Assembly: GCF_000315625.1 (NCBI RefSeq)
Contig: NW_005434659.1
Span: forward strand, 885,848 to 949,847
DNA: 64,000 nucleotides
Direction of reading: 5' to 3'
Source of the DNA: Guillardia theta CCMP2712
Lineage: Eukaryota; Protista; Cryptophyta
Positions 52,509-56,216 of the stretch are shown here, one piece after another. Made by a program: the position numbers and the translations under genes. A model generated the notes under the pieces. The model saw only the letters and a program-made list of their open reading frames with translations, searched no databases and was not told the origin of the DNA. The number at the start of each line of letters is the position of its first letter. Positions within the stretch are counted from its first letter, which is position 1.

Positions 52509-55500
52509 ATGCCGGCCTTGTGTCGGGCCATCACAAGGAGGCTCCCTCCTCTCCTACGAACTCGACCAGTCATCGCGCATGTCCGCTGGTTTTCTTCCAG
52601 CAAGCACAAGCACAACAACTACGCCCTCGTCCTCAATGCTGGCAGCTCGAGCATCAAGTATGGCCTGTTCGACATCAAGACAGACGGGAAGGATGGCACA
52701 GAGCTTTGCTCGGGTATCGTTGACAGCCTTGGCTCTGAGAACGCGAAGCTCAAGCACAAGGATGTAACAGGAGGAAAGGAAGTAATCCACGAGATGTCCA
52801 TTCCAGATCATGCCACCGGACTGAAGAAAGTGGTTGAAATCCTGACTGAACGCGATGGGGCCATTCAAGACCTCAACGACATCAAAGTTGTCGGGCATCG
52901 TGTTGCGCATGGCGGCAATATGTTTTCAGGGCCCACGGTCATAGACGACCAAGTCATACAGGCGATTGAAAAATGTTCGACTCTAGCTCCACTTCACAAT
53001 CCAGCAAACCTTATAGGGATTCGGATCGCAAAGGAGCTTTTCCCCGCTCCGCATGTTGCTGTGTTTGATACTGCATTCCATACCACGATGCCCCCGGAAT
53101 CATATCGCTATGCGATTCCAAAAGAGCTCTACGAAGAACACGGTGATTAGCACTTCTCTGCATTTAAGCAAAATGATCCATTTTCTGTTCACAACAGGAA
53201 TTCGACGATATGGCTTCCATGGTACCAGCTACACCTTTGTTCTTGGAGCCACTGCATCCGTGCTCAAGCGTCCGATAGAGGACTTGAACGTTATAATGCT
53301 GCATCTAGGGAGTGGAGCAAGCATGTGCTGCGTGAAGAATGGAAAAGGCATAGATACAACTATGGGAATGACGCCATTGGAAGGATTGGTAATGGCCACC
53401 CGCTGTGGAGATGTCGATCCTGGCATCTACACGCATCTCTGCACTCAGCTTAACATGTCTCCTGCAGAGGTAGACAGGATGTTGAATAGGAGAAGTGGTT
53501 TGCTGGGGCTGTGCGGACAGAACGACATGCGCAGTATCATCTCTGCAGCCAGTAAAGGCGACCAGGACGCAAAACTGGCGAGACAGATCTTTGTTGAAAG
53601 GATACGAAAGTACCTCGGAGCATACCTGGTGAAACTGAACGGAGAGCTCGATGCTATCGTATTCACAGGAGGGATCGGAGAAAATGATTTTGCCCTCAGA
53701 GAATCGATTTGTGATGGCTTGAGGTCCTTGGGGATTGAGCTGGATACTACCAAAAACCTTAGCGGACTCTCTCTCTGCGAGGTTCAAGGGACGTTCTCAA
53801 GGACGAAGATTCTGGTGATCCCCACCAACGAAGAGCTCTCCATCGCACTGCAATCAGCAGACGTGGCTGGTATCGTCTCCAAACTGTCCGGAGCGGAGAA
53901 GCTTGCACAGGCACAAACAGAGTGGCAAGTCCCGGAGCAGGCTCAGTCCGAACAAGACCCAGCTGCACCCAAGCTCGGAAACGCCTTGTTTGTTGAGGGG
54001 ACTGGAATGACTGCTGTGGAGGAGGTCGGATTGTTGTACGCGGTCCTCCCCCGCGCTCCGAGGGTCGGATATTTCCGTCCGTTTGCTGAGGGCGAGAACG
54101 ACCGCAGCATTTCTTTGATGCGATCCATCTTTCGTCTGGATGATTCTCCTGAAGTCATGCAAGGAATCACGGTGGCAGAAGCCACCAAGCTGCTCTCACA
54201 TGGGCAAGAGAAAGAGCTCTTTGATCAGATCCTGAGCAAGTACGTCGAATACAGGAAAGGGAAGGACTTTGTCTTGGTCAGTTGCGGTCGTTTGGAGAAT
54301 GACAGCCATTTCTGGTCGCAGAAAATGGCAGCAGCACTCAACCTGCCTGTCCTTCTCATCTCAGATGTGGGGCATGAATCGGACTTGGCCATCATCAAGG
54401 GAGGGCTCGAGTCCAGCAACGTGAAGATTGCGGGAGTTCTGATGAGCGGCCTGCCGCCGGGCAACGAGTATGCGGAGACTGCCAACGAATGCAAGGAGGC
54501 CATCGAACAGCTGGGCTTGAGGTCGGTCGGAATGCTTCCAAAGTCAGCCATCATCCACCAGGTGACCATGGCGGAGGTGGTGGACGCCCTGGGAGCGAAG
54601 GTGTTCTTCGGTGAGGAGAGCCTCGATCGCTCCATCGTCAAGGACATCACGGTGGCTACGTTGGACATGAACCGCATGCTCCATCGCCTGCGAGTTCATC
54701 CGGGAACGTTGGTGATCGTCCATTCCGGACGCGCTGACGTTCTCCTCTCCCTTGTCCTCGCTGCTCGCTCCAGCAACTATCCTCGTCCTGCGGGCATCCT
54801 CCTGACCGGATCGAGGAATCTTGATCCCGACGTTGACGACATTCTGTGCGGTCTCAACGGCATCGCCATGCCTGTCATCGGCGTGGAGGAAGACACGTTT
54901 GCCTGCACCACCACCCTCCTGAAGCACCGGCCCGTGCTCCTCCCCAGCAGCACGACCAAGATCGAAGCAGCTCAGGTTCTCTTCCAGAAGCACATCGACC
55001 CCAAGTTTCTCAACCAGCTGGTGGCGACCAACGCAGATGACTATGTGGTCACCCCCAAGCTCTTCCAGCACAACATCTTCTCTGCCGCTCGTACCGATAA
55101 GCAGAGAATCGTCCTGCCGGAGGGAGACGATCCCCGAGTGCTGGCAGCAGCTGGAGAGCTGCTGGCAAGGAACCTCTGCGAGGTGACGATCTTGGGCAAG
55201 GAAGACTTGATCCAGAACAAGGCGAAGAGAAACCACGTGTCGCTCAAGGGCGCTAAGATTGTCGACCCCGAGACCGAGACGACCGAAGAGATGGTCGATG
55301 CGCTTTACAACGCCAGGAAGTCCAAGGGAATGACCAAGGAGCTGGCGAGGGACATGCTGCAGGGAGAGCCCAACTGGTTCGGCACCATGATGATGTACCT
55401 GGATCAAGCCGACGGCATGGTCAGCGGCGCATGCCACAGCACGGCAGCGACCATGAGGCCAGCGCTGCAGGTGATCAAGATGGCGCCGGGCTTTTCGCTC

Positions 55501-56216
55501 GTCAGCTCCGTCTTTTTCATGCTCCTCCCCGGCAGGGTCCTCGTCTTCGGCGACTGCGCCATCAACGTTGACCCCACGGCTGACGAGCTCGCAGAAATCG
55601 CAGTCGCCAGCGCTCATACCGCGCGAGCCTTTGGCATCCTCCCGCGCGTTGCCATGCTCTCCTACGCCACCGGCGACTCCAACCAGGGCCCGATGATCGA
55701 CAAGGTCAGGGAGGCGACTAAGAAGGCTCGGCTGCTCGCCCCCAACGAGCTCATCGAGGGCCCCATTCAGTTCGATGCTGCTGTTGACCCAGCGGTAGCA
55801 GCGGTGAAGTACAAGGGGCAAGACAGCCCGGTAGCTGGCAAGGCAACTGTCCTCGTCTTCCCCGACCTCAACGCAGGCAACAACGCGTACAAGGCTGTGC
55901 AACAAGCGTCTAAGTCCATTGCCGTCGGACCCATCATGCAGGTGCGACTCCTCCCATCCCCGCTCTCCACAGTTTTCATCCTTTTCCTCCTTTTTCCTAC
56001 TCATTCCTCCCTTCCTCCACCCCCCTCCTTCCCCTCCCCCTCCGCCATTGCTGCATCTGTCATCATCGTTTCTCCTCCTCAGCTGACGAAGAGCCGCAGG
56101 GTCTCCGCAAGCCCGTCAACGATCTCAGCAGAGGATGCACCATCGACGACATCGTCAACACCGTCGTTGTCACATGCCTGCAGAGCAAGGCCAGCAAGGA
56201 ACTGGCCAAGAAGTGA
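52509..56216 (+). CDS. Acetate kinase-phosphotransacetylase fusion (ACK + BioD-like/DRTGG + PTA), probably mitochondrion-targeted; exons 52509-53142, 53198-55941, 56100-56216 (about 1164 aa)
   Basis: ACK motifs: [85 protein letters not shown] motifs: [54 protein letters not shown]|[12 protein letters not shown]. Both lie in one reading frame within exon 2. Confidence 0.95.

Follow-up and report, generated by a model that had tools for sequence, protein, structure and literature searches.

The window analyzed in this study, a stretch of 64,000 nucleotides (nt) of Guillardia theta CCMP2712 nuclear DNA, carries a gene in which an acetate kinase (ACK) is followed, in one reading frame, by a phosphotransacetylase (PTA). 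The ACK-PTA gene lies on the plus strand at positions 52509-56216, comprises three exons, and encodes 1164 amino acids (aa). It starts with the ATG at 52509, ends with the TGA at 56214-56216, and gives a spliced coding sequence of 3495 nt; an in-frame TGA at 52491-52493 lies 5' of the ATG. Exon 1 (52509-53142) holds the ATG, a 37-aa leader, and the N-terminal half of ACK, that is, residues 1-211 and the first base of codon 212. It is followed by intron 1 (53143-53197), which is 55 nt long, has GT..AG ends, and is located within the ACK domain. Exon 2 (53198-55941) is a single open frame containing the C-terminal half of ACK, the linker, the N-terminal domains of PTA, and most of the PTA catalytic domain. 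Intron 2 (55942-56099; 158 nt) is CT-rich and also has GT..AG ends, and exon 3 (56100-56216) supplies the final 38 residues and the TGA. The raw open reading frame (ORF) at 53053-56331 spans the ACK-to-PTA junction with neither a stop codon nor a splice joint, the junction being wholly within exon 2. Residues 482-1164 were 100% identical to GUITHDRAFT_93085 on JH992979.1, and the product of exon 3 is identical to the C-terminus of that protein. The original prediction, made from the sequence of the window, had described a single polypeptide with a complete ACK and a class-II PTA. Its ATG and TGA positions were exact, the N-terminus (residues 1-30) and linker segment (residues 445-469) that it quoted matched the translated gene letter for letter, and the single polypeptide was borne out by the Pfam matches and by the junction lying in one exon-2 frame.

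Transcriptome contigs from three studies (runs X1, X3, and X6) were aligned to positions 52300-56500 of the window. In X1, one contig of 4571 nt corresponded to 52496-53141, 53197-55937, and 56096-56478, and one contig of 3650 nt in X6 covered 52496-56353 in the same three pieces. Two contigs of X3 spanned the same region and overlapped at 54993-55022, with the break located within the PTA part and not at the junction of the two enzymes. Only two joints were present within the gene, both with GT..AG ends and skipping 55 and 158 nt, and zero letter differences from the window were observed. As both introns had been spliced out in the X1, X3, and X6 contigs, the contigs originated from spliced RNA. 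Moreover, they started at 52496, 13 nt 5' of the ATG, and ran beyond the stop codon; thus, the leader belongs to the mRNA. Over the ACK-PTA junction itself, where the predicted continuity could be checked, the spliced contigs from all three studies were unbroken. Bacterial contamination and an assembly artefact were also considered as the source of the gene, and both were ruled out by the two spliceosomal introns removed in RNA together with the eukaryotic neighbor genes.

The public annotation shows two models at the locus, namely, a 435-aa ACK and a 683-aa PTA. The ACK model has no stop codon at its end (53868) and the frame runs on, the PTA model begins at Met482 (54007), and residues 436-481 (53869-54006) are left unannotated between them. 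The split models look like the result of homology-guided truncation rather than biology. If the two GenBank models were nevertheless correct, ACK and PTA would be separate enzymes, arising through proteolysis in the linker or because transcription or translation begins internally at Met482, and the fusion would be only apparent. Some observations do weigh against a single fused product. The contigs are compatible with an extra internal start, the unconserved linker could be cleavable, and the raw-read RNA run X22 gave 72 reads only, almost all at the 3' end. Since the evidence consists of assembled contigs and not of single reads, some transcripts may also start internally, or the protein may be cut within the linker. 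However, the ACK model stops at residue 435 where the frame continues, the spliced contigs are continuous in three studies, and the unbroken ORF is kept, despite linker drift, in approximately 40 clusters of related proteins over distant algae, many of them from transcriptomes. The ACK and PTA halves also gave congruent trees, as described below. Two separate enzymes are accordingly considered improbable, and it was concluded that the public annotation wrongly splits one gene, the model of which is now supported by RNA.

The domains of both enzymes were located with family profiles. The ACK domain (52620-53871; residues 38-436) is split by intron 1 and matched PF00871, a family of the ASKHA superfamily, with E-values of 1e-53 and 4e-82. 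Of the 392 positions of this profile (Acetate_kinase), 2-170 were matched by exon 1 (183 bits) and 172-391 by exon 2 (276 bits), the cut-off being 22 bits. The PTA part begins with an AAA_26 (BioD-like) domain (53998-54549; exon-2 residues 267-450; PF13500, E = 1.3e-8) and a DRTGG domain (54574-54918; exon-2 residues 459-573; PF07085, E = 2e-15). They are followed by the PTA_PTB catalytic domain (55063-56177; PF01515, E = 3e-104), which is split by intron 2 so that profile positions 2-293 were matched in exon 2 and 294-319 in exon 3, the latter exon carrying S1136-R1137 and D1143. As the profiles resume across both introns, the splice joins are seamless and nothing is lost. Judged from sequence similarity, with E-values from 1e-53 to 1e-104, a chance match is excluded. 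With TIGR00016, the exon products scored 177 and 277 bits against a cut-off of 293, compared with 438 bits for the intact orthologue P0003; the ACK subfamily carries the NCBIfam title 'acetate/propionate'. For NF004167, the class-II pta equivalog, the exon-2 product without exon 3 scored 627 bits against a cut-off of 418 and matched profile positions 13-674 of 708. The three-part class-II PTA architecture (AAA_26, DRTGG, and PTA_PTB) is therefore present as in NF004167 and PRK05632. In bacteria, the BioD-like/DRTGG N-terminal region of class-II PTA is regulatory, and hexamers under allosteric control are typical of the class. The PTA catalytic domain could be aligned end to end with PDB 7t88, and zero solved chains matched the AAA_26/DRTGG region at E <= 1e-10.

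The active sites were examined in alignments of 165 ACK and 123 PTA domains, in which columns with 98-100% conservation were taken as invariant. All the invariant residues were kept in the Guillardia protein, namely, N43, K50, H130, R131, D187, H219, R280, and E423 in ACK and R918, R965, D997, S1136, R1137, and D1143 in PTA. The roles of the ACK residues come from the literature on the Methanosarcina enzyme, and the corresponding motifs are Asn-x-G-S-S-S-x-K, H-R, D-T-A-F-H, G-F-H-G-T-S, T-R-x-G-D, and T-N-E-E. In PTA, the catalytic Ser-Arg and Asp lie in the motif N-D-L-S-R-G-x-x-x-x-D, and two further Arg residues (R918 and R965) bind the substrate. Thus, the two halves have intact active-site residues, and both activities are very probably retained. 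The case for reading the protein as a bifunctional ACK-PTA, built on its domains and residues, is strong. The inter-enzyme linker (53872-54006; residues 437-481, approximately 45 aa) is rich in Ala, Gln, and Glu, and its sequence is not conserved among orthologues; thus, it is most likely a flexible tether.

The distribution of the fusion was determined by a word-based protein search with the exon-2 product, after which the three Guillardia domains were mapped onto all 130 retrieved proteins. The full-length fused relatives were 1130-1340 aa long and showed 45-53% identity over 100% of the exon-2 query. They were found in Prymnesium parvum (two paralogues), Chrysophaeum taylorii, Aureoumbra lagunensis, Triparma verrucosa, T. 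laevis, Seminavis robusta, Pseudo-nitzschia arenysensis, Chlorarachnion reptans, and Rhodomonas lens, and in many marine transcripts. At least five lineages carry the fusion, comprising haptophytes, pelagophytes, diatoms, bolidophytes, one chlorarachniophyte, and a second cryptophyte. In 45 of the 130 proteins, ACK was followed by the N-terminal PTA region and then by the PTA catalytic domain; as a few of these proteins share a cluster, they correspond to approximately 40 clusters. A shorter ACK-PTA without the N-terminal PTA region was observed in seven proteins, and the reverse order, PTA then ACK, in six, two of which sit in plainly bacterial gene neighborhoods. Mapping of the domain architecture thus placed the same order in distant algae. 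The original prediction had warned that its novelty would shrink if this architecture were already widespread and characterized. Widespread it is, at approximately 40 clusters and at least five algal lineages, but no characterization was found in the literature, and a full-text literature search returned no paper in which a natural ACK-PTA fusion is described. A diatom ACK-PTA fusion may be mentioned in reviews on the anaerobic metabolism of algae that appeared in approximately 2010-2013. In a specialist summary of 2022, fungi, Chlamydomonas, Phytophthora, and Entamoeba are the only eukaryotes for which ACK is listed (PMC9983610). According to a preprint of 2026, ACK and PTA among stramenopiles are restricted to oomycetes (bioRxiv 10.64898/2026.07.27.741032), a claim that is contradicted by the diatom, bolidophyte, and pelagophyte fusions. 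The Guillardia gene, mis-annotated in public records, belongs to a family of algal fusion enzymes that is widespread but has apparently escaped description.

The origin of the two halves was examined with trees and with bacterial loci. According to the original prediction, the organellar enzyme arose from a bacterial ackA-pta operon by transfer and by fusion of ackA with pta. The order ACK then PTA is indeed the ackA-pta order of Gammaproteobacteria, and an unrelated fusion, P0054 on L004, does resemble an operon read-through. In a scan with both halves, with one genome per prokaryotic species and the 80 best loci examined, none of the loci was fused; 62 of the 80 had pta then ackA and 15 had ackA then pta, mostly in Gammaproteobacteria, and the identity to Guillardia was 33-44% for most loci. 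The bacterial fusions found in metagenomes are in the reverse order. The trees were unrooted quick-search trees, built without chlorophyte, oomycete, and fungal sequences and with bacterial sampling consisting of the most similar matches only. In the ACK tree, the 21 sampled algal fusions formed one clade (SH-aLRT 99) and stood, together with unfused ACKs of the streptophytes Mesotaenium, Marchantia, Diphasiastrum, and Ginkgo, opposite all 53 bacterial sequences on a 99% branch. Similarly, the 21 sampled fusions formed one clade in the PTA tree (support 100), and the fusions with moss and Creolimax PTAs were opposite all 55 bacterial-type sequences (99). Grouping of the fusions with the proteobacterial ackA-pta group was rejected by the approximately unbiased (AU) test for PTA (delta log-likelihood 101, p = 1.4e-4) as well as for ACK (delta log-likelihood 83, p = 1.3e-4). 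Both halves thus group with unfused eukaryotic genes and apart from all the sampled bacteria, and an operon origin is regarded as very unlikely.

Within the fusion clade, in which the ACK and PTA halves of Guillardia both branched, the subclades agreed between the two trees, namely, the diatoms (with Triparma and Chlorarachnion as sister), the pelagophytes, and the Prymnesium group. As the subclades were congruent, the halves have traveled together since one fusion event. Most simply, the trees can be read as the joining, in an ancestral alga, of an ACK and a PTA gene that eukaryotes already possessed, with the fusion later passed on by vertical descent or from one alga to another. The two genes would be of the type inferred for the ancestor of Chloroplastida (PMC12924338).

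Several members of the set showed features of their own. The fusion P0054 (L004:5001-8498; Logan SRR30822903) is an independent ACK-then-PTA fusion, both halves of which are sister to the ackA-pta operon genes of Glaciecola punicea. Its linker reads like a pta start (…SRTIMLIPT…), as though the ackA stop codon had been lost, and the gene is intronless and located on an AT-rich (36% GC), gene-poor contig of 77 kb; it may represent a recent transfer into a eukaryote. The Rhodomonas lens protein P0010 (MMETSP0484) has a 75-aa leader and an EF-hand pair (PF13405/PF13499/PF00036) inserted in the N-terminal region of PTA at residues ~783-875; this form of the fusion enzyme may be under calcium regulation. 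The short fusions P0035-P0039, P0043, and P0044 (729-782 aa), found on transcript-size contigs, contain neither AAA_26/DRTGG nor a leader but fall within the algal fusion clade; in the PTA tree, no other group lay closer to Guillardia (support 87; ACK identity 61%). The Chlorarachnion reptans protein P0011 (MMETSP0109) grouped tightly with the bolidophyte Triparma in both domain trees, which points to gene transfer or culture contamination. In the green alga Pycnococcus provasolii, a genome locus on BNJQ01000030.1 (L085:6094-7224) was 99.5-100% identical to the catalytic PTA domain of P0020/P0123, a cluster of fused proteins. Neither ACK nor the N-terminal PTA region was found within 6 kb upstream of this locus, although transcripts resembling Pycnococcus carry the fusion; the genes may be arranged differently there, or the gap may be due to a long intron or to mis-assembly.

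The N-terminal extension of the Guillardia protein (52509-52619; residues 1-37) precedes the first conserved ACK residue (~38) and resembles a presequence. By comparison, the short fusions and bacterial enzymes start only 3-8 residues before the first conserved ACK residue. The leader contains 6 Arg, 2 Lys, 3 His, and 0 Asp/Glu and has a net charge of +8. Arg accounts for 16% of the leader versus 4.5% of the remaining protein, and given the composition of the latter, the probability of a leader without Asp or Glu is ~0.009. Processing-peptidase sites carry Arg at position -2 or -3, and R26-W-F|S29-S in the leader fits the R-3 pattern. Moreover, similar leaders in the orthologues P0132, P0002 (Prymnesium), and P0005 end with the pattern R-x-F-S-S. 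The maximum 12-residue Kyte-Doolittle hydropathy was 0.62, indicating that a signal-peptide core is absent. Since import into the plastid or periplastid compartment of cryptophytes needs a signal peptide and the leader has no hydrophobic core, targeting to these compartments was ruled out.

A mitochondrial location is opposed by two observations. The maximum 18-residue hydrophobic moment of the leader was 0.58 (residues 1-18, a segment with two prolines), a value reached by 511 of 5000 shuffles, and some family members, among them the Prymnesium paralogue P0003 and the short fusions P0035-38, have no leader. On these grounds the fusion protein could be real but cytosolic, or located in another compartment of this four-genome cell. 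Such a location is possible but rather unlikely in view of the 37-aa, acid-free extension with its recurrent R-3-type site, the absence of a signal-peptide core, which speaks against plastid or periplastid import, and the C-terminus -AKK, which is not a type 1 peroxisomal targeting signal as generally known. The mitochondrial presequence of the original prediction thus held at the level of its Arg-rich, acid-free composition and its R-3-type site. The best reading, held with moderate confidence, is that the leader directs ACK-PTA to mitochondria.

Taken together, the observations probably describe one nuclear gene giving one spliced mRNA and a bifunctional ACK-PTA of 1164 aa, which is most likely mitochondrial and belongs to an old family of single origin. 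On the gene structure, the continuous spliced mRNA, the domains, the catalytic residues, and the family membership, a proposal for activity, direction of flux, channelling, and mitochondrial location can be built as follows. PTA catalyzes acetyl-CoA + Pi <-> acetyl phosphate + CoA, and ACK catalyzes acetyl phosphate + ADP <-> acetate + ATP (PMC9983610). The ~45-aa flexible linker would fix the two enzymes at a ratio of 1:1 and in the same compartment behind one leader, and the tether may keep the labile acetyl phosphate local; channelling of acetyl phosphate is plausible. The basic, acid-free leader of 37 aa would send the protein to the mitochondrial matrix, where it would convert acetyl-CoA with substrate-level gain of ATP under limited respiration or, in the reverse direction, activate acetate. 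The family itself probably descends from one old ACK-then-PTA fusion, with halves related to separate eukaryotic genes and not to the sampled bacterial operons.

The direction of flux is not decided by the sequence. G. theta is reported to have PFO, an oxygen-sensitive source of acetyl-CoA, and neither PFL activase nor hydrogenase (PMC8003979, Table 4); thus, a route from pyruvate through PFO/PDH to acetyl-CoA and then to acetate and ATP is conceivable. Fermentative ATP production of this kind has to be weighed against a main flux toward activation of acetate for mixotrophy, or toward disposal of acetyl phosphate made by phosphoketolase. The PAT-ACK route is reversible in algae and assimilates acetate in Chlamydomonas at normoxia (PMC12924338), and ACK pairs with phosphoketolase in fungi (PMC9983610). 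In addition, the ACK-PTA transcript was found at moderate depth in ordinary culture transcriptomes, which argues against induction by anoxia alone and for a function that is always needed, for example in overflow metabolism or in the activation of acetate. The PFO of G. theta fits an anaerobic source of acetyl-CoA. Acetate activation or phosphoketolase-linked disposal as the main direction is considered the less probable case, though one to be taken seriously.

The surroundings of the gene were also inspected. An AMPK beta-subunit-like gene (AMPK1_CBM, AMPKBI) lies upstream at 49564-50689 of the plus strand, and a model of more than 988 aa with TTL and importin/HEAT-like Pfam matches lies downstream, from ~57935 on the minus strand. 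No functional link between these neighbors and ACK-PTA is evident. The X1 and X3 contigs jump from 56478 to ~56574 and omit a CT-rich repeat of 95 nt (56479-56573) that is GT..AG-compatible on the minus strand. This segment is probably an intron of the convergent neighbor, whose transcript overlaps the 3' end of ACK-PTA and was merged with it in the assemblies. Runs of N (assembly gaps) are located downstream at 56757-57460, 58042-58141, and 61024-61146 and leave the ACK-PTA coding sequence untouched.

Pta-AckA is the classic bacterial route to ATP from acetyl-CoA, and what is documented of it in eukaryotes comes mainly from Chlamydomonas and Phytophthora, in which the two enzymes are separate (PMC9983610). 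The present analysis corrects the Guillardia gene model and shows that the fusion is expressed and that it is common among marine algae of ecological dominance, including diatoms, haptophytes, and pelagophytes. This bears on how algae survive dark or anoxic periods and on the sources of acetate in sediments and blooms. As a natural pair tethered at 1:1, the enzyme also offers a test case for the channelling of acetyl phosphate, which is both a reactive metabolite and a signal. Protists often fuse enzymes that catalyze successive steps of a pathway, so that the biochemistry as such is no surprise. A wider scenario may be put forward quite tentatively, as it is rather doubtful. One ancient fusion of eukaryote-type genes, possibly from the green lineage, with channelling between the two enzymes, would have spread through cryptophytes, haptophytes, ochrophytes, and chlorarachniophytes, and the forms with a leader would be the main source of mitochondrial substrate-level ATP in the dark or under anoxia, and the producer of acetate, in marine phytoplankton. 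Current models of these algae do not include such a pathway.

Compared with known systems, bacterial AckA and class-II Pta (PRK05632 type; enterobacterial ackA-pta), which act through acetyl-CoA, acetyl phosphate, and acetate with ATP (PMC9983610), have the same catalytic domains, the same three-domain Pta, and identical catalytic residues. However, they are encoded by separate genes without a leader or introns, and they are not the nearest relatives of the algal proteins in the trees. Bacterial PTA-ACK fusions from metagenomes (P0052 on L002, P0058 on L003, P0041, P0046, P0048, and P0067) are also single ORFs, but with PTA first. Those at L002:5001-8285 and L003:5001-7478 are reverse-order single-ORF fusions of 1094 and 825 aa, and on L003 the AAA_26 and DRTGG parts were called as separate small genes directly upstream of the fusion. 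The bacterial PTA-ACK fusions branched among Actinomycetota-like and other bacterial sequences; given this placement and the reverse order, they represent independent events.

Among eukaryotes, Chlamydomonas has separate pairs working reversibly, with PAT1/ACK2 in mitochondria and PAT2/ACK1 in the plastid (PMC8003979, PMC12924338). The organellar route of Chlamydomonas and other Chloroplastida is thus similar, but the genes are separate, unlike those of Guillardia. In the trees, which were built without chlorophytes, the nearest unfused relatives were streptophyte ACK and moss PTA. The oomycete Phytophthora likewise has a eukaryotic pair of ACK and PTA (PMC9983610), but as separate genes; both proteins have been reported as mitochondrial candidates (bioRxiv 10.64898/2026.07.27.741032). 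The closest match is provided by the algal fusions, which are automatically named 'Probable acetate kinase' in databases and include MMETSP transcripts of Rhodomonas lens, Chlorarachnion reptans, and Pseudo-nitzschia arenysensis. Their leaders differ, being mitochondrial-like in some and absent in others, but their domain order (ACK, linker, AAA_26/DRTGG, and PTA_PTB) and clade are the same as those of the Guillardia protein, and their length is similar.

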